Shown here in pieces: positions 1 through 11,030 of a stretch of 64,000 nucleotides of DNA. Below the pieces are notes generated by a model, which was not told the origin of the DNA, did not search any database, and saw only the letters and a program-made list of their open reading frames with translations. Position 1 is the first letter of the stretch. Each line of letters starts with the position of its first letter. The position numbers were made by a program, and so were the translations under genes. The stretch is from Schizochytrium sp. TIO01. Taxonomy: Eukaryota; Protista; Bigyra: Labyrinthulomycetes. The stretch spans positions 8,352,761 to 8,416,760 of the forward strand of contig SMSO01000031.1 in NCBI GenBank assembly GCA_004764695.1, written 5' to 3'.

Positions 1-634
1 CATCACTCTATCAATCAAATAGTTAGTACTTTTCTACAAGCACCACTAGAATGCTTAACAACTCATCGACGATCAACGTGTCAAGAGATAATCTATATAT
101 GGGACCGGGGTATACTAGGTATTGACGAGTGGTCATTAGTCACGCCTTTTTATAGCCCCTTAACAGATTAAGAGTCAAATAGCTTAAACTCTAGGAGATA
201 GAGTTGCCGTATGTTGGTCCCGGGTTCGATCCCCCCATGATGTAAGTGCCTGGAAAAAGAAGGACTTACTGGGGGGTAGGGGAGTCCTATTCCTGCTGGG
301 ATGTCGAATCAGTCTCTAACCGAAATATGAACCTTTCGCCCAGAGAATGGGGGGGTGTCAAGAGATAATCTATATATGGGACCGGGGTATACTAGGTATT
401 GACGAGTGGTCATTAGTCACGCCTTTTTATAGCCCCTTAACATTATGGTGAGAGAATAGTTTTACAAATTAGACATAAGTACTTCCATCATATTATATGC
501 TATTCTTACTGAAGTCTCCCATATCCACGAATGTCAGCAGGCGCATAAAAACTTTTTATTTTTTAAAAGAAAATATTTTCAATTCTTCTTAAAATATTTT
601 TGGTAAAACCATTGATAAATATAATGTATAATAG
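1..634. repeat. Telomere-adjacent satellite of a second chromosome end (inverted near-copy of ~1478-1747), interrupted by a TRIM
   Basis: 1-78 plus 443-634 match the reverse complement of ~1478-1747 with a few SNPs and indels. Confidence 0.9.
79..442 (+). mobile_element. Non-autonomous miniature LTR retrotransposon (TRIM family A, copy 1, 364 bp)
   Basis: Identical 87-bp LTRs at 79-165 and 356-442 (TGTCAAG...CTTAACA); GATTAAGAGTC PBS abuts the 5' LTR; purine tract AGAGAATGGGGGGG abuts the 3' LTR; absent from the homologous site near 1665. Confidence 0.9.
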
Positions 635-1477: not shown

Positions 1478-4029
1478 TTTATACATTATATTTATCATGG
1501 TTTTACCAAAAAAATTATTTGAAGAAATTGAAAATATTTCTTTAAAAAATAAAAGCTTTTATGCGCCTGCTGACATTCGTGGATATGGGAGACTTCAATA
1601 AGAATAGCATATAATATGATGGAAGTATTTATGTCTAATTTGTAAAACTATTCTCTCACCATAATTCAACGTTGATCGTCGATGAGTTGTGAAGCATTCT
1701 AGTGGTGCTTGTAGAAAAGTACTAACTATTTGATTGATAGAGTGATGACACTACAAAGTTTCCCTTTTCTGGTGATGAGTAATATGAGAAACTAAGAAAT
1801 AACTTTCAAAAGTTAATAAAAACAAAACCATAATTTTTTTTTTTTTGAACGAACACATCTACCCGGTTGTAAATGTTTCAAGCTTTCCAATGGTACCACT
1901 GGATGATTAATATATTATCTCATTGTTGAGAAAATGAATATTATACTCATCAATTTATTCTTTATCCTGCTCACAAATAGTGACAACTTGGAGCTTCTTT
2001 TCTCAAGCTTGCAAGTATGTTTTTTCTCATAATTCAAATACATGCAACTTAATAATTCATGAGCTATCGAATGGGGCTTGGAGTAAAGCTCTGGCTATTC
2101 TAATGATAAAGTTAGAACACTACTAAACTTGGTACCTTCCCCCTATTAATAATATGAGAGACCAAAATTAAACTTTCAAAGCTCAGTAAAACTATATATT
2201 AAAAGTATTTTTTCTGAGAAAACACATCTACCTTGTTGTAAATTCAAACAGCTTTCCAATGGTACCACTCGATGATTAATATATTATCTCATTGTTGAGA
2301 TATTGAATCTTATACTATTCAATTTGCCCTTTATCCTGCTAATAAATAGAGTAACAACTTGGAGCTTCTTTTCTCAAGCTTGCAAAAATACTTTCAATCA
2401 TAAATCAGACGCGGTTATCTCAAAAATTCATGATTTATCGAATGGTGCTTGTAGCAAAGTTCTGTCTGTTCTAGTAATAGAGTTATAACACTACTAAACT
2501 CCTATTAATAATATGAGAAACAAAGAAATATCTTTCAAAAGTCAATAGAACATAGTCATATATTTTTTTTCCTCTGAACCAACACATGTATCCTGCTGTA
2601 AATGGCAACAGCTTTCCAACGGTACCAATCCATGATTAATATATTGCTTAATCATTGAGAAAATGAATCTTGTACAAATCTTTTAATTCTTTCTTTTGTT
2701 ATTAAATAGAGTAACAACTTAGAGCTTCTTTTCTCAAACTTGAAAAAATATTTTCTCTCATAAATCAAATGCGGCCATCTCCACAATTCATGCGCTATCG
2801 AAGGGTTCTTCTAGAAAAGTTCTGTGTACTCTACTCGTAGAGTTAAAACACTACTAAACTCGGTTCCTTTCCCCTATTAATAATATGAGAGACAAAAAAT
2901 ACACTTTCAAAGGTCAGTAAAACTATATGTTAAAGTATTTTTCTGAGAAATTACATCTACCCTGTTGCAATTTCAAGCTGCTTTCTAATGGTACCAGTCT
3001 ATGATTTATATATGTCCCCGTTGTTGAGAAAATGCATCTTATACTAATCATTTAATTCTTTCTTTTGTTATCAAATAGAGTGACAACTTAGAGCTTCTTT
3101 TCTCAATCTTGCAAGAAGCTTTTCTCTCATAAATCAAACGCGGCCATCTCAACAATTCTTGAGCTATCGAATTGTGTTTGTAGAAAAGTTCTGTATATTC
3201 TACTCAAAGAGTTAGGACACTACTAAACTCGGCTCCACCCCCCTATTAATAATATGAGAGACTAAAGAATAACTTTCAAAGGTCAATAAAACTATATGTT
3301 AAAAGTATTGTTTTCTGAGAAAACGCATCTACCCTGTTGTAGACCTTAACAGCTTTCCAACGGTATCACTCCATGATTAATATCTTTCCCCATTGTTGAG
3401 AAAATGAACCTTATAGTAGCAAATGTTTTCTTATCCTGCCATTAAACAAAGTAACAACTTGGAGCTTTTTTACTCGAGCTTGCAAGCAAATTTTTTCTCA
3501 TAAATCAAATACACAGATCTTAACAATTCATACGCTATCGAGTGGGACTTGTGGCAAAGCTCTGTCTATTCTATTAATAGAGTTAGAACACTACTAAACT
3601 CGGTTTCTCTCCCTATAAATAATATGAGAAACAAAAAAATATCTTTCAAAAGACAATAACACATAATCATAATTTTATTTTTTCTGAACCAACACATCTC
3701 CCCTGTCGTAAATTGAATCTACTTTCCATCGGTACCACTCCATCATTAATATCTTTCTCCGTTGTTGAGAAAATGATTTTATACTAGCCGTTTAATTCTC
3801 TATCCTGCTCACAAATAGAGTAGCAACTTGGAGCTTCTTTTCTGAAGCTTGCAAAAACATGTTTTCTCATAAATCGAATGCACGTATCTCATTAAAACGT
3901 GAACTATTGAGTGCTTTTTATAGAAAAGTTCTGGCTTTTCTTTTCATAGAGCTAGAACACTACTAAACTCAGTTATTTCTCCTTATTAATAATATGAGAA
4001 ACCAAAAATAAACTTTCAAAGGTCAGTAA

Positions 4030-4393
4030 TGTTAAGGGGCTATAAAAAGGCGTGACTAATGACCACTCGTCAATACCTAGTATACCCCGGTCCCATATAT
4101 AGATTATCTCTTGACACCCCCCCATTCTCTGGGCGAAAGGTTCATATTTCGGTTAGAGACTGATTCGACATCCCAGCAGGAATAGGACACCCCTACCCCC
4201 CAGTAAGTCCTTCTTTTTCCAGGCACTTACATCATGGGGGGATCGAACCCGGGACCAACATACGGCAACTCTATCTCCTAGAGTTTCAGCTATTTGACTC
4301 TTAATCTGTTAAGGGGCTATAAAAAGGCGTGACTAATGACCACTCGTCAATACCTAGTATACCCCGGTCCCATATATAGATTATCTCTTGACA
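4030..4393 (-). mobile_element. TRIM family A, copy 2 (364 bp) with AGTAA target-site duplication
   Basis: 87-bp LTRs at 4030-4116 and 4307-4393; AGTAA at 4025-4029 and 4394-4398; I count 2 internal substitutions versus copy 1. Confidence 0.93.
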
Positions 4394-5121
4394 AGTAAAA
4401 CTATATGTTAAAAGTATTTTTTCTGAGAAAACACATCTACCCTGTGTCAAATCTTAACAGCTTTCCAACGGTACCACTCCACGATTAATATCTTTCCCCG
4501 TTGTTGAGAAAATGAACCTTATACTAATCATTTTGCTGCGCACAAATAGACTGGCAACTTCGAGCTTCTTTTCTCAGGCTTGACAGGGTCTTTTTTCTCA
4601 CAAATCAAATTCGGGCATCTCAGCATTTCGTGTGCTATCAAGGGATTCCTATATCAAAGTCCTTTCTATTCTATGCATTGAGTTAGAACACTACTAAACT
4701 CAGTTCTTTCTCCCTATTAATGATATGGGCGACTAAGAAATAACTTTCAAAGGTCAGTAAAAATAAAGTTTAAAATATTTCGCCTGAGAAAACACATCTA
4801 CCCTGTGTCAAATCTTAACAGCTTTCCAACGGTACCACCTGATGATTAATATCTTTCCCCGTTGTTGAGAAAATGAACCTTATACTAATCCTTTTTCTGC
4901 TCACAAATAGAGTGGCAACTTAGAGCTTCTTTTCTCAGGCTTGCAAGAAGAGTTTCTCTCATAAATCAAATGCACCCACTTTCAATATTACTCAGCTATC
5001 AGACGATACTTGTAGCAAAGTTCTGTCTATTATATGCATAAAGTTACAACACTACTAAACTCGGTTCCTTCCCCCTATTAATAATATGAGAGACCAAAAA
5101 TAAACTTTCAAAGGTCAGTAA

Positions 5122-5756
5122 TGTCGCGAGGACTGTTGCTCGGTTCTTATATGCAGGTCTTATATTAGGTGGGAACACGGGTAAGCGTTTCCCACAGTAG
5201 AGGGAAAAGGGAAAGAAAAACAGAAGAGACGGGAATCGAACTCAAGACGTAAGAAACCTTTTAATTATTTTAACCAAAAGGTGGTCTTAGCACTAAGCCG
5301 AATATTGTTGCTTCGCTGTACCTTATATAGATAATAGCTCCCAACAATACACCCCTTACGGACGTGAGAAACGATTTGTTCTTCCTGTGAAAGTTGAAGT
5401 TTATTAGTACGTACCACTGGAGCTATGACTGTGAATGTCCAGCTGGCGGACACCCCTGACTGTGAGGGGGGTACGACTAAGCTTTTCACTGCTCTACCCC
5501 AGAGTGCAAGCACTTTGGGCCCATAACCTGTCGCGAGGACTGTTGCTCGGTTCTTATATGCAGGTCTTATATTAGGTGGGAACACGGGTAAGCGTTTCCC
5601 ACAGTAGAGGGAAAAGGGAAAGAAAAACAGAAGAGACGGGAATCGAACTCAAGACGTAAGAAACCTTTTAATTATTTTAACCAAAAGGTGGTCTTAGCAC
5701 TAAGCCGAATATTGTTGCTTCGCTGTACCTTATATAGATAATAGCTCCCAACAATA
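5122..5756 (-). mobile_element. TRIM family B (635 bp), Copia-type, with AGTAA target-site duplication
   Basis: Identical 228-bp LTRs at 5122-5349 and 5529-5756; minus-strand PBS GGTTATGGGCCCA directly after ...GCGACA (5528-5516); short purine tract AAGGGGTG before the 3' LTR; AGTAA at 5117-5121 and 5757-5761. Confidence 0.92.
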
Positions 5757-7384
5757 AGTAAAACTATATGTTTAAAGTATTTTTTCGGAGAAATCACATC
5801 TACCCTGTTGTAATTTCAAGCAGCTTGCCAATGGTACCACTCCATGATTTATATATTTCCCCGTTGTTGAGAAAATGCATCTTATACTAATCATTTATTT
5901 ATTTCTTTTGTTATCAAATAAAGTGACAACTTAGAGCTTCTTTTCTCAAGCTTGCAAGAAGCTTTTCTCTCATAAATCAAATGCACTCATCTCAACAATT
6001 TATGCGCTATCGAAAGATTCTTCCAGAAAAGTTCTGCTTACTCTACTCATAGAGTTAAAACACTACTAAACTCGGTTCCCTCCCCCTATTAATAATATGA
6101 GACACAAAAAATAATCTTTCAAAGGTCAGTAGAAAAACATTTTAAGAATATTTCAGCTAAGCAAACACATCAACCCTGTTGTAAATTGCCCCAGCTTTCC
6201 AACGGTACCACTCCATGATTTATATACCTCCCCGTTGTTGAGAAAATGCATCTTATACTAATCATTTATTTATTTCTTTTGTTATCAAATAGAGTGACAA
6301 CTTAGAGCTTCTTTTCTCAAGCTTGCAAGAACATTTTTTCTCATAAATCAAATGCACTCATCTTAACACTTCATAAACTATCGATTGATGTTTGTAGAAA
6401 AGCTCTGTCGATTGTATTTATAGAGATACAACACTACTAACCCAGTTCCTTCCCCCTATTAATAATATGAGAGACAAAAAAAATAACTTTTAAAGGTCAG
6501 TCAAATGCATGTTTAAAGTATTTTTTCTGAGAAAACACATTCAATCTGTTGTAAATTCAACCAGCTTTCCAATGGTACACTTCAATAATTAATATATTAT
6601 CCCGTTGTTAAGAAAATGAATCTTATACTAACCATTTAATTCTCTGTCCTGCTCACAAACAGAATGATAACTTGGAGCTTCTTTTCTCAAGCTTGACAGG
6701 GTCTGTTTTCTCACAAATCAAATTCGGGCATCTCAACAATTCGTGTTCTATCAAGGGATGTCTATAGCAAAGTCCTTTCTATTCTATTCATAGAGTTAGA
6801 GCACTACTAAACTCAGTTCTTTCTCCCTATTATTGATATGGGCGATTAAGAAATAACTTTCAAAGGTCAGTAAAAATAAATTTTAAAAACATTTCGCCTG
6901 AGAAAACACATCTACCCTGTTGTAAATTGCCCCAGCTTTCCAACGGTACCACCTGATGAGTAATATCTTTCCCCGTTGTTGAGAAAATGAACCTTATTCT
7001 AATCATTTTGCTGCTCACAAATAGAGTGGCAACTTAGAGCTTCTTATCTCAGGCTTGAAAGAAGAGTTTCTCTCATAAATCAAATGCACCCACTTTAACT
7101 ATTATTCAGCTATGCGACGATGCTTGTAGCAAAGTTCTATCTATTATATGCATAAAGTTACAACACTACTAAACTTGTTCCCTCCCCCTATTAATAATAT
7201 GAGAGACCAAGAAATAACATTCAAAGGTCAATAAAAATTAATTTTAAACATATTTCGCCTGAGAAAACACATCTCGCCTATTGTAAATCTTAACAGCTTT
7301 CCAACGGTACCACCTGTTGATTAGTATCTTTAGTGGTTAATGAAATATTGTCCCTTGTGAGGATCCATCAACTGCTTGTTTAAA

Positions 7385-8955
7385 TAAAGTGATAACTAGG
7401 AGCTTCTTTTCGCAAGCTTGAAAGCATATTTTCTCGCAACGATTACAACTATACTGTGGTAACAACGACGCACTTCCCGACGGTGCTTGTCGAAAAGACC
7501 TAACAATTTTATCAAGAAAGTTATAACAGTACTAAGTTTAGTTCTTTTCTCTTATTAATAATATAGAAGAGTAACATTTTCTTTTAAAAGTTCGAAAAAT
7601 ACTTTCAAAGATTTGTTTTTTCTGACTCATGCCATCATCCGTATTCTGTATTGCTTGCGCTTTCTACTGATCCAAATCTTTAAATGATCAATAATGTAGT
7701 TGTGGAGATAATGGGGTTTTGAAGAAGTGAGAGGCTGCTGCCAAATACCTGGAAGGGTATTTTCTCATAATTTTAGAACGATTTCCTCTGGAGAACTTCA
7801 ATAGTATAGCTCTCCATAAATTTTCTGGTCTAATGGTGCAAGAATAACATGTGTCTTTCGAGTAGTTGTCGAGAAAATATGTCTTTCTTTCTTTCGATAA
7901 TCCATCAGTTGCCTGATAAAGTGATCACTTGGAGCTTCTTTCCGCAAGCTTGAAAACATAATTTTTCGCAACGATTATAACTATACTGTGGTAAAACCGA
8001 CGCAGGTCCCGTCAGTGCTTGTCAAAAATATCTAGCTACTTTATCCAGAAAGTTACAACAGTACTAAGTTTAGTTCTTTTCTCTTATTAATAATATAGAA
8101 GAGTAACATTTTCTTTTAAAAGTTCGAAAAATACTTTCAAAGATTTGTTTTTTCTTGTTCATGTCATCGTCCGTATTCGTTATTGCTTGCGCTTTCTACT
8201 GATCCAATTCTTTAAATGATCAATAAAGTAGTTGTGGAGATAATGGGGTTTTGAAGAAGTGGGAGGCTACTGCCAAATACCTGGAAGGGTATTTTCTCAT
8301 AAATTTCGAATGCTTTCCTCTGGAGAATTTCAATAGTACAGCTCTCCATAAAATCGCTGATCTAATGGTACAAAAATAACATGTGTCTTTCAAGTATTTG
8401 TCGAGAAAATATGTCTTTCTTTCTTTCGATAATCCATCAGTTGCCTGCTAAAGTGATCACTTGAAGCTTCTTTCCGCAAGCTTGAAAACATATTTTTTCG
8501 CAACGATCATAACTACCCTGTGGTAAAACCGACGCAGGTCCCGTCAGTGCTTGTCAAAAAGATCTAGCTATTTTATCCAGAAAGTTACAACAGTACTAAG
8601 TTTAGTTCTTTTCTCTTATTAATATTATGGAAGAGTAACATTTTCTTTTCAAAGTTCGAAGAATACTTTCAAAGATTTGTTTTTTCTCACTCATGCCATC
8701 ATCCGTATTTTATATTGTTTGCGCTTTCTACTGATCCAAATCTTTAAATGATCAATAAAGTAGTTGTGGAGATAATGGGGTTTTGAAGAAATGGGAGGCT
8801 GCTGCCAAATTCCTGGAAGGGTATTTTCTCATAATTTTAGAATGGATTCCTCTTGAGAACTTTCACAGTACAGCTCTCCATAAATTTGCTGATCGAATGG
8901 TGCAAGAATAACATGTGTCTCTCAAGTAGTTGTCGAGAAAAGCTGTCTTTCTTTA
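7385..8955. repeat. Subtelomeric ~531-bp satellite (~3 units)
   Basis: AGCTTCTTT[T/C]CGCAAGCTTGAAA recurs near 7400, 7932 and 8463; first part is homologous to the 366-mer. Confidence 0.9.
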
Positions 8956-8984: not shown

Positions 8985-11030
8985 CAAAAGATGGCAACTA
9001 CGTAGGGGTCAAACTCGATGTTGCCAAGAGTATTTTTCAATTCAGGCACACCTATTCTATGCAAAATTAAATTTCCGATCTAATGATATCATTTTTATGG
9101 ATCTCACTCTTCTTGGTGTTGATAAAATACCCCTTTGTTCAAAGTAATAGTATATTGAGAAAGACAGAGCGAGTTGAAAGAAGCGTTATAAGGATGATGT
9201 AGGGGTCTTCTGAGCCATTAATAAAATGTTTTTTAACTTTTGTGCTGTCACCATGTTCATTCTTGCCGAATCCTAGCTCGTAGTTCAAAAACGAAAAACA
9301 TCAATCAACTCCTCATCGAGAAAAGACCCCCTCAATATCAATAGCATTATTCTTACTTTCTTTTAAAAATTAAAAACCTTCAGTTCGATTTAAAAGAAAA
9401 TTAAAAGATGGCAACTACGTAGGGGTCAAACTCGATATTGCCGACCGTATTTTTCAATTCTGACACGCCTATCCTATGCAAAATTGAATTTTCTATCCAA
9501 TGATGCCACTGTTATGGACCTCTCTTTGCTTGGGGTTGATTAAATACCCCTTTGTTCAAAGTAATAGCATATTGAGAAAGACAGAGCGAGTTGAAAAAAG
9601 CGTTATAAGGATGATGTAGGGGTCTTCTGAGCCATTAATAAAATGTTTTTTAACTTTTGTGCTGTCACAATGTTCATACTTTCCGAACCCTAGCTCGTAG
9701 TCCGAAAACGAAAAACATCGATCAACTCCTTATCGAGAAAAGATCCCCTCAACAGTATCTTTTTCTTACTTTCTGTTTCAAATTAAAAACCTTTAAATAG
9801 ATTTAAAAGAAAATTAAAAGATGGCAACTACGTAGGGGTCGAATTCGATGTTGCTGACAGTATTTTGCAATTCTGGCACACCTATCCTATGCCAAATTGA
9901 ATTTCCTGTCCAATGGTACCCCTTTTAAGGATCTCACGTTTCTTGGTGTTGATAAAATACCCCTTTGTTTAAAGTAATAGTATATTGAGAAAGACAGAGC
10001 GAGTTAAAAGAAACGCATTAACTATGATGTAGGGGTCTTCTGAGTTATCAATCAAAATACTTTTTACCTTTTGGGCTGCTACAATGTTCATACGCTCTGA
10101 CGCCTAGCTCGTAGTCCAAAAACGAAAATCATCGATCAACTCCTTGTCGAGAAAATACCCCCTAAGTAGTATGTTTTCTTACTTTCTTTTTAAAAATAAA
10201 AACTTCAGTTCGATTTAAAAGAAAATTAAAAGATGGCAACTACGTAGGGGTCAAACTCGATATTGCCGACTGTATTTTTCAATTCTGACACACTTAATCT
10301 ATGCACAATTAAATTGCCGATCTAATGATACCACTTTCATAGATCTCCTTTTGCCTGGTGTCGACAAAAGACCCCTTTGTTCAAAGTAATAATATATTGA
10401 GAAAGAAAGACTGAGTTAAAAGAAACGTCTTAACTATACTGTAGGGGTCTTCTGAGCCATTAATAAAATGTTTTTTAACTTTTGTGCTGTCACAATGTTC
10501 ATACTTTCCGAACCCTAGCTCGTAGTCCAAAAACGAAAAACATCGATCAACTCCTTGTCGAGAAAAGACCCCCTCAATAGTATGTTTTCTTACTTTCTTT
10601 TAAAAATTAAAAACTTTCGGTTCGATTTTAAAGAAAATTAAAAGATGGCAACTACGTAGGGGTCAAACTCAATGTTGCTGACAGTATTTTTCATTTCTGA
10701 CTCACCTATCATATGCCAAATTGCATTCTCTGTCCAATGGTACCACTTTAATGGATCGCCCGTTGCTTGGTGTTGATAAAATACCCCTTTGATCAAAGTA
10801 ATAGTATATTGAGAAAGACAGAGCGAGTTAAAAGAAACATTAAAATGATGATGTAGGGGTCTTCTGAGCTACCAATCAAAACGTTTTTACATTTTGGAAT
10901 GTTACAATGTTTATACGCTCTGACGCCTAGCTCGTAATCCAAAAACGAAAATCATCGATCAACTCCTTGTCGAGAAAAGACCCCCTAAATAGCATTATTT
11001 TTACTTTCTTTTTTAAATTAAACATCTTTA
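8985..11030. repeat. Subtelomeric ~413-bp satellite (~5 units)
   Basis: AAAAGATGGCAACTACGTAGGGGTC near 8986, 9403, 9816, 10228 and 10640. Confidence 0.93.

Follow-up and report, generated by a model that had tools for sequence, protein, structure and literature searches.

Two unrelated miniature LTR retrotransposons, TRIM A and TRIM B, are inserted at one offset in separate 366-bp units of a subtelomeric satellite, and we regard Ty5-like regional targeting combined with local structural hot spots as the best reading of this coincidence, with a probability of about 0.6.

Organization of the chromosome ends

The window, namely the whole 64,000-nt stretch analysed, includes two chromosome ends placed head to head, which corrects the preliminary description. 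The telomere joint (635–1476) is composed of (TTAGG)n at 635–1031 and (CCTAA)n at 1036–1476, and the junction is an N at position 1032. The Group-2 LORE-TEARS array, with units of 361–372 bp, spans 1780–7313 and was the target of both TRIM insertions. It is followed by 532-bp units (Group 3 LORE-TEARS, 7384–8950) and 412-bp units (Group 1, 8986–11022), which at other loci of the genome carry insertions of A, B and Copia Y as well. The spacer is bounded by the 28S-5.8S-18S rDNA (12024–17549, minus strand), transcribed toward the telomere. The 366-mers have been published as Group-2 LORE-TEARS in Aurantiochytrium limacinum, with the TTAGG telomere on one side and the 28S gene on the other; in that publication LORE-TEARS are unexplained repeats, and mobile elements are not mentioned. 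An empty 366-bp unit reads CTTTCAAAGGTCAGTAAAACTATATG (e.g., at 2904). Note that joints lacking A or B in short Logan contigs were indistinguishable from other empty units and hence carry no information on polymorphism among strains.

TRIM A and TRIM B share an insertion site

TRIM A and TRIM B belong to the Ty1/copia kind of LTR retrotransposon and are miniature, young and non-coding. Specifically, both show the LTR, primer site and polypurine tract layout and a 5-bp target-site duplication (TSD), and their longest ATG open reading frames encode 34 aa (A) and 46 aa (B), so that neither has coding capacity. This classification had been proposed in the preliminary description, and it stands. 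In the literature searched, we found no description of either family.

TRIM A (4030–4393, sense on the minus strand) is 364 bp long (87 + 190 + 87). Its LTRs (4030–4116 and 4307–4393), reading TGTCAAGAG...CCTTAACA with TG...CA termini, are 87 nt each and 100% identical, as examined by direct reading and repeat finding. The TSD, AGTAA, lies at 4025–4029 on the telomere side and at 4394–4398. The polypurine tract AGAGAATGGGGGGG (4117–4130, minus strand) adjoins the 3' LTR, and the primer binding site GATTAAGAGTCAAATAGC (4289–4306, minus strand) is complementary to the anticodon arm of tRNA-Lys(CUU) as far as position 40. At least 14 nt of this site are complementary to a putative 17-nt anticodon stem-loop (anticodon CTT) that occurs 26 times in the genome; 14 of the 26 occurrences of TTTGACTCTTAATCAAA form one tandem array with a period of 208 bp, and these are candidate host tRNA-Lys loci. 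The third copy in the window is also a TRIM A (78–442, plus strand; LTRs 78–164 and 356–442) and belongs to the neighbouring chromosome end. On one side, 10 bp of its flank are missing, and its paralogue at position 5694637 of contig C13 has a CGTTG TSD.

TRIM B (5122–5756, sense on the minus strand) is 635 bp long (228 + 179 + 228), with LTRs at 5122–5349 and 5529–5756 that are 228 nt each and again 100% identical by both methods. The LTR reads TATTGTTGGG...CGCGACA, and the termini are TA...CA in every copy. AGTAA is present at 5117–5121 and 5757–5761, and a polypurine-like tract, GTAAGGGGTG (5350–5359, minus strand), adjoins the 3' LTR. The core of the primer binding site, GGTTATGGGCCC (5517–5528, minus strand), is the same as the site in most family-1 Copia copies, and we take it to be the complement of the canonical initiator-tRNA (iMet) anticodon arm. 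Genome pattern searches for a host iMet found no contiguous anticodon-arm match outside the elements, the approximately six 12-mer hits being the number expected by chance. Judged from these sites, the primer for reverse transcription would be a tRNA fragment ending at anticodon-arm position 40, namely Lys(CUU) for A and an initiator-Met-like tRNA for B. As to expression, an oligo-dT RNA-seq contig covered TRIM B but included none of the far more abundant satellite.

The two elements are thus flanked by AGTAA at one offset in different units, whose flanks are ~80% identical, and both this shared site and the lack of relationship between the elements were borne out. The sole likeness between TRIM A and TRIM B was an 18-nt TATA-like stretch with 15 of 18 positions identical, which was matched by 12 of 500 shuffles. 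Both elements also contain a GGTTCGA-type T-loop motif, yet a tRNA-derived or Pol III (SINE-like) module was not supported: ARAGORN called no tRNA at these motifs, and Rfam searches (E up to 10) returned a 13-nt T-arm match only.

Copia-type elements as candidate partners

A search for full-length Copia elements with shared termini or primer sites yielded a partner candidate for TRIM A. Copia X is intact and ~6 kb long, with a single 1671-aa open frame in which the gag-pre-integrase and integrase SH3 domains lie upstream of RVT_2, and it was found solely in these chromosome-end spacers. A and X have in common the TGTC start, the last two LTR bases CA, a G-run polypurine tract and 16 nt of the primer site (4291–4306 in TRIM A) without a mismatch. 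Copia X is a likely protein donor for TRIM A, as judged from these shared features. Alignment showed that Copia X and Copia Y have LTRs of their own, distinct from LTR A. LTR A was also considered as the LTR of Copia copies ~4.9 kb away, and the alignment identified these matches as solo A LTRs in the satellite.

For TRIM B, the donor may be a Copia family, 1 or Y, whose primer site is of the iMet type. More than 20 copies of family-1 Copia contain GGTTATGGGCCC 3.1–3.9 kb upstream of RVT_2; this is a more dispersed family, whose comparison with TRIM B concerns the 12-nt primer site only. The match of the B primer site to a dispersed family does not fit a simple account in which the integrase of the partner targets subtelomeres.

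Intact copies of Copia X and Y, each with its own 5-bp TSD, were found 3–15 kb from chromosome ends. In both, the ~220–300 aa after the integrase SH3 domain had no Pfam match, and this region was not conserved between X and Y. The suggestion that an integrase is supplied in trans hence retains a partner candidate for A and, for B, a family with an identical primer site; its site specificity was not upheld, as described below.

Scored copies lie in a telomere-to-5S rDNA zone or in other retroelements

After duplicates were collapsed, 30 A and 15 B insertions with differing flanks and TSDs remained as independent events genome-wide, where the A census covers 40 of 54 candidate loci and copies elsewhere may exist. 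Every scored copy lay in the zone from the telomere to the 5S rDNA or inside another retroelement, in agreement with the proposed Ty5-like subtelomeric distribution. The settings comprised LORE-TEARS, telomere-adjacent sequence, telomeric repeats, positions 145–303 bp downstream of the 28S gene, a position ~1 kb from a 5S gene, and other retroelements. Clean 5-bp TSDs were recovered for 38 insertions (24 A and 14 B); nearly all differed, with 71% A+T and without a consensus, and no target motif was detected within 10 nt on either side of the TSD.

Among these, 25 TRIM insertions were in the 366-mer, at ~20 different offsets and in both orientations. The earlier impression that TRIMs point toward the telomere holds for the window, where all three copies face their own telomere when the primer site and polypurine tract are used to define the sense strand, but it is not general, and an orientation bias was dismissed with 13 insertions toward and 12 away from the telomere.

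Hot spots within the 366-mer

We then pooled the independent A, B, X and Y insertions on the 366-mer, 36 in all. With offsets mapped through units of 75–90% identity, and hence uncertain by 1–2 bp, 21 pairs fell within 2 bp of each other compared with 8.5 expected (p = 0.0008 against a uniform and p = 0.007 against an AT-weighted null), in a test that was partly post hoc because it was prompted by the AGTAA coincidence. Several of the coincident pairs were oppositely oriented, indicating that they do not go back to one event. Approximately eight recurrent hot spots were common to the four Copia-type families, among ~25 distinct offsets used altogether; in the unit starting at 2904 of the window their centres are 15, 35, 93–97, 136–138, 195–197, 278–281, 322–323 and 353–355. 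AGTAA is one of these hot spots. When the test was restricted to the 25 TRIM insertions, p was 0.012–0.065.

Weighing the explanations

The main alternative is that integration was near random, that copies in the gene-dense regions making up most of the genome were lost while those in the non-coding chromosome-end spacers survived, and that shared sites reflect chance or a mild AT preference. We consider this less likely, though by no means negligible. The TSDs, A+T-rich and without a consensus, are as it would predict, known genes are absent from the LORE-TEARS spacers, the sharing of sites between A and B taken alone was not significant on the 366-mer (p = 0.08–0.33), and it was the AGTAA coincidence itself that first drew attention. 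On the other hand, all 45 independent TRIM events fell within ~1–2% of the genome, a figure that describes where surviving copies sit rather than where new integrations occur, so that selection in a gene-dense genome could look similar. Other, larger Copia copies and fragments nevertheless remain hundreds of kb to Mb from chromosome ends, indicating that retention outside the zone is possible, yet no scored TRIM copy was found there. The copies are also very young, as judged from the identical LTR pairs, and the clustering within 2 bp persisted under the AT-weighted null.

A site-specific integrase recognising ...GGTC-AGTAA-AAC... of the 366-mer, as initially put forward, is refuted by the genome-wide set of TSDs: copies occupy scattered sites with diverse TSDs, an outcome that the preliminary description had itself named as counting against it. 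Three independent insertions, namely an A, an A solo LTR and B, did use AGTAA at a single offset and all face one way, and the flanks of the second A insertion are just 76–80% identical to those of the window site. However, 35 of the 38 clean TSDs were not AGTAA, the two orientations were used about equally, and 412-mers, 532-mers, telomere repeats, sequence downstream of 28S and other retroelements were targeted too. Spread of one or a few insertions per family among chromosome ends by subtelomeric recombination, the other possibility raised at the outset, agrees with several insertions found on a pair of contigs with 200-bp flanks that do not differ (e.g., C3/C36, C13/C24, C16/C33 and C12/C31) and with the tandem LTR-internal-LTR arrays and TSD-less solo LTRs, which indicate that recombination is active, but as a sole explanation it is refuted by the 45 distinct events left after collapse and has a negligible probability.

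Under regional targeting with local hot spots, the TRIMs would depend on intact Copia elements of their own genome for proteins supplied in trans. The integrases would lack sequence specificity and would be steered to the chromatin of the telomere-rDNA-5S domain, most likely by tethering through the long C-terminal region of the integrase, by analogy with Ty5, and such tethering would place essentially all insertions in this zone. Within it, fixed offsets of the 366-bp unit would be favoured, probably since DNA or nucleosomes are positioned alike in each unit, and all Copia-type integrases would use them in either orientation. With AGTAA as one such hot spot, two unrelated TRIMs and a third independent A insertion come to share it.

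More tentatively, the telomere-to-5S rDNA domain of Aurantiochytrium might be a dedicated landing pad for Copia X, Copia Y, TRIM A and TRIM B, with unrelated integrases all tethered to its chromatin. Recurrent insertion at given offsets in either orientation might then mirror a fixed phasing of nucleosomes or proteins on LORE-TEARS, and the elements could aid turnover and homogenisation of chromosome ends.

LORE-TEARS and the adjoining parts of the telomere-to-5S zone are home to all scored copies of two active-looking TRIM families, save those inside other retroelements. Two Copia families have their intact copies there as well, and insertion hot spots are shared. Caution is called for because some portions of these "satellites", the 406-bp B arrays among them, are in fact retroelements. 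The TRIM A and TRIM B findings do not reveal a new kind of integrase; they make available, outside yeast, a transformable protist for tests of Ty5-like, region-targeted LTR integration.

Comparison with known systems

TRIMs (terminal-repeat retrotransposons in miniature) are known chiefly from plants, with further examples in bivalves (bioRxiv 10.1101/010850; PMC6934838). The elements here resemble them in having a non-coding internal domain of ~180–190 nt enclosed by two short LTRs, a primer site and polypurine tract adjoining the LTRs, a 5-bp TSD, tandem LTR-internal-LTR arrays and the need for an autonomous partner. They differ in their thraustochytrid protist host, in the LTR of just 87 bp in A, in the TA rather than TG start of B, in the apparent half-tRNA priming of both, and in that copies sit at chromosome ends, not near genes.

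With respect to priming, Kikuchi et al. are said to have found in 1986 that Drosophila copia is primed by a 5' fragment of initiator tRNA-Met. As in copia, the primer sites here pair with the anticodon arm and end at about position 39–40, rather than pairing with the tRNA 3' end. Copia uses iMet, whereas A and Copia X would use tRNA-Lys(CUU) in the same register, so that tRNA-Lys would join the short list of half-tRNA primers.

Residence at telomeres or rDNA is also known for SART/TRAS in TTAGG repeats and for R1/R2 in 28S, all of them non-LTR elements whose endonucleases are sequence-specific and which have one target sequence each. The elements here are, in contrast, of the LTR type and use many targets. 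Ty5 of Saccharomyces, a Ty1/copia element, integrates into telomeric and silent chromatin through binding of the integrase C-terminus to Sir4. The likeness to Ty5 extends to the Copia type, a primer site of the half-tRNA-iMet type, a regional preference for chromosome ends that involves no sequence specificity, and an integrase with a long C-terminal region. Ty5 has been reviewed (PMC5911963; PMC7459421); for the elements here, a targeting motif and a host partner are hypothetical. In contrast to Ty5, the target domain here is a subtelomeric rDNA/satellite zone, and this zone and its local hot spots are common to no fewer than four families, some of them non-autonomous.

Chromosome-end setting

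In the window, a (TTAGG)n telomere that ends one chromosome (635-1031) is linked head to head, through a single N at 1032, to the (CCTAA)n telomere that starts another (1036-1476), indicating that the 9.8-Mb "contig" C30 is a set of concatenated chromosomes. Telomere-telomere junctions of a similar type were found within contigs C13, C24, C30, C31, C33, C34 and C36. Inward of the (CCTAA)n telomere follow ~300 bp of unique telomere-adjacent sequence, an array of 361-372-bp satellite units (1780-7313; hereafter 366-mer), 532-bp units (7384-8950), 412-bp units (8986-11022), a 28S-5.8S-18S rDNA unit on the minus strand that is transcribed toward the telomere (12024-17549) and, beyond it, a 5S gene (26490). 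The same architecture, with TTAGG telomeres and LORE-TEARS groups 2, 3 and 1, has been published for Aurantiochytrium limacinum (bioRxiv 10.1101/2023.06.15.545109); neither that paper nor, in the literature searched, the others that cover both Aurantiochytrium and retrotransposons mention retroelements in these spacers.

Structure and expression of TRIM A and TRIM B

TRIM A (4030-4393) and TRIM B (5122-5756), both with the minus strand as sense, have LTRs of 87 and 228 nt, respectively, each pair being 100% identical, and the longest ORF in either element is at most 46 aa. In the sense direction, the A LTR (TGTCAAGAG...CCTTAACA) is followed by the primer site GATTAAGAGTCAAATAGC (4289-4306, minus strand), and the polypurine tract AGAGAATGGGGGGG (4117-4130, minus strand) adjoins the 3' LTR. 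The B LTR (TATTGTTGGG...CGCGACA) is followed by the primer site GGTTATGGGCCC (5517-5528, minus strand), with a polypurine-like tract, GTAAGGGGTG, on the same strand ahead of the 3' LTR. AGTAA is present on both sides of A and of B, which occupy two separate 366-bp-type units with a flank identity of ~80%, and unoccupied units read ...CTTTCAAAGGTC-AGTAA-AACTATATG. The sole similarity between A and B is an 18-nt TATA-like stretch at an equal LTR position (ATAATCTATATATGGGAC, A LTR 10-27; ATTATCTATATAAGGTAC, B LTR 15-32; sense strand), which matches at 15/18 positions and was equalled by 12 of 500 shuffles; it is likely a TATA box at a similar distance from the LTR start in otherwise unrelated elements. 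Inspection of LTRs, TSDs and flanks therefore bore out the preliminary description, in which two unrelated elements share one offset of different units and the AGTAA duplication. Note that the third A copy of the window (78-442) lacks 10 bp of flank (TTCAACGTTG) beside one LTR; its paralogue at C13:5694637-5695000 has an intact CGTTG TSD. T-loop or B-box-like motifs occur in the A internal region (GGGTTCGATCCCC; 4238-4250, minus strand) and in the B LTR (GAGTTCGATTCCCGTC; 5122-5349 and 5529-5756), and neither ARAGORN nor Rfam supported a tRNA there.

One contig of 388 nt from an oligo-dT RNA-seq run, which does not define the transcript ends, lay over TRIM B (5283-5670). The same run showed no coverage of the satellite, which is far more abundant, and this speaks for transcription and against carry-over of DNA. 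The window stretch, whole or in parts, was present in sequencing runs of 14 studies under several organism labels.

Primer sites and autonomous Copia relatives

The A primer site complements the anticodon stem-loop TTTGA-CTCTTAA-TCAAA (anticodon CTT, lysine) and ends at tRNA position 40. The genome has 26 occurrences of this 17-mer (reversed control, 0), of which 14 are arranged in tandem with a period of 208 bp at C35:885929-888647, presumably as an array of tRNA-Lys genes. We take the B primer site to complement the canonical arm of initiator tRNA, GGGCCCATAACC, in the register seen in A; genome pattern searches found no host match for the B site that continues without a break into the 3' stem strand. 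Drosophila copia and Ty5 are characteristically primed by a 5' tRNA half.

Matches to the Copia reverse transcriptase domain (RVT_2) fell into three groups, family 1, X and Y. Family 1 scores 124 bits, has open frames of up to 1700 aa and matches rve in about half of its copies. These number more than 20, at distances between 15 kb and over 1 Mb from chromosome ends, and in nearly all of them GGTTATGGGCCC precedes the RT by 3.1-3.9 kb. X has an open frame of 1671 aa, a 582-bp LTR (TGTCGGAGC...CGCTTGTCA) directly followed by GATTAAGAGTCAAATAAGC, and a polypurine tract (...GGGGGCAGGGGG); one copy lies at C21:2907-8895 with the TSD AGTTA. The X frame reaches ~170 nt into its own 3' LTR before the first stop (L040:2985-3155). 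Y has open frames of 1675-1695 aa and a 472-bp LTR (TGTTGTC...CAACAAAA), followed by GGTTATTGGCC. In both X and Y, a gag-pre-integrase and an integrase SH3 domain precede RVT_2, and the two families are 31% identical across the integrase, with ~220-300 unconserved residues between integrase and RT. Nearly all X and Y copies were found 3-15 kb off chromosome ends, flanked by 5-bp TSDs and inserted in LORE-TEARS or telomeric repeats.

A agrees with X at the last two LTR bases and 16 nt of the primer site, and the TGTC start and a G-run polypurine tract are common to both; no further similarity between them was found. This likeness is of the kind usual for a TRIM and its helper. The proposal that A and B are Copia-type TRIMs needing proteins in trans is supported. 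A candidate gag-pol Copia partner sharing LTR ends and primer site was found for A; B matches family 1 at the primer site. Since family 1 is dispersed, such a helper would not fit neatly with region-directed integration, and Y, which is alike at 10/11 bases of the B primer site, is an alternative candidate.

Distribution of copies across the genome

We searched the 64-Mb assembly for A and B, scoring 40 of 54 A candidates and all 19 B candidates, which gave 44 matches for A (among the scored candidates) and 27 for B. Copies with identical flanks, representing subtelomeres duplicated between contigs, were merged, leaving 30 A and 15 B independent events. With chromosome ends located by the telomere-adjacent sequence, B events lay 1-12.5 kb and most A events 0-8 kb from an end. 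The 366-mer, accounting for about half of the spacer, contained about 60% of the events of each element; the remaining hosts were the 532-mer, the 412-mer, telomere-adjacent sequence and telomeric repeats proper. Off the satellite, A lay 145 and 303 bp past the 3' end of the 28S gene, at a distance of ~1 kb from a subtelomeric 5S gene, and within a Copia Y LTR. The sole A copy found beyond the telomere-5S zone (C5:65880-66240; TSD GACTT) lies in a Ty3/gypsy-type element (RVT_1 and RT_RNaseH matches), whose RT/RNase H open frame it breaks. None of the scored A or B copies was in a host gene or ordinary intergenic DNA. The restriction of the elements to subtelomeres is supported. At one chromosome end (C13:4037710-4038663 = C24:5807472-5808430), telomere-type repeats directly host a solo LTR of Copia X (TSD TAACC) and a variant of TRIM A (LTR start TGTGAA, TSD TAGGT).

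All 45 independent events are confined to some 1-2% of the genome, the copies are of very recent origin (LTRs identical, 98-100% identity between copies), and larger Copia copies and fragments survive far from chromosome ends, indicating that tolerated places exist elsewhere. For these reasons we favour region-directed integration, with a probability of about 0.6; random integration followed by loss of the insertions elsewhere, against which the same three points speak, is the less likely reading. A site-specific, satellite-targeting integrase, as had been proposed, is refuted, since the 38 clean 5-bp TSDs are nearly all different: those of 24 A events include AAACG, TTTTG, GACTT, TACAG, TAAGT, ATTAT and CGTTG, those of 14 B events include TGCTA, ATCAA, CTAGC, GGAAG and TCGAT, and no target consensus was found among them (A+T 71%). 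The spread of one insertion per family by recombination is contradicted by the 30 A and 15 B events. The telomere-ward orientation holds for the window and not generally; because TRIM events in the 366-mer split into 13 toward and 12 away from the telomere, the uniform pattern is a coincidence.

Tandem LTR-internal-LTR arrays contain three LTRs at C12:21435, C24:27388 and C6:5415 and eight at C36:2341642. Solo LTRs occur with and without TSDs, the latter probably by recombination between neighbouring insertions. A solo B LTR within a solo Copia Y LTR (C12:140616-140843), where 17 nt are replaced and no TSD is present, looks like the product of recombination between two B insertions ~20 bp apart. 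Tandem ~1.9-kb units at C31:5933000-5942999 contain sequence 68-71% identical to the B LTR and lack a primer site of the iMet type; they may represent a related non-autonomous element of greater age.

Shared insertion offsets in the satellite

Independent insertions were placed on one reference unit (window 2904-3272), taking the TSD centre as the site. The 25 TRIM events centred on 15 (three events), 35 (two), 45, 74, 90, 93, 97, 108, 137, 138, 195, 196, 246, 250, 278, 280, 281, 300, 304, 335, 342 and 353. Of the three events at 15, the third, a solo A LTR at C12:77257 (identical to C31:3194709), counts as independent because the identity of its flanks to those of the A site in the window is only 76-80%. 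TRIMs alone gave four same-offset pairs versus 0.8 expected (p=0.012) and a triple at one offset (p=0.017), which is suggestive only, since the AGTAA coincidence itself prompted the test. Separate data came from 11 X and Y insertions (63, 95, 136, 196, 197, 290, 311, 322, 323, 353 and 355), often on TRIM clusters: X/Y sites at most 2 bp from TRIM sites numbered 10 versus 3.7 expected (p=0.012). For all 36 events, 21 pairs fell within 2 bp versus 8.5 expected (p=0.0008 under a uniform null, 0.007 when A+T-weighted). Coincident pairs in opposite orientation (A/A at 35, A/A at 137/138, Y/Y at 196/197 and X/X at 322/323) are not one event moved by recombination. Sites were slightly commoner in better-conserved parts of the unit (p=0.03).

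We conclude that integration recurs at several hot spots of the satellite, which are common to four families and include AGTAA. Their use in both orientations fits hot spots that depend on the target and not on recognition of a sequence, and phasing of nucleosomes or proteins on the satellite could produce such fixed offsets. TRIMs, half-tRNA priming and a regional bias like that of Ty5 are of known kinds; the less ordinary feature is the sharing of hot spots at fixed satellite offsets.
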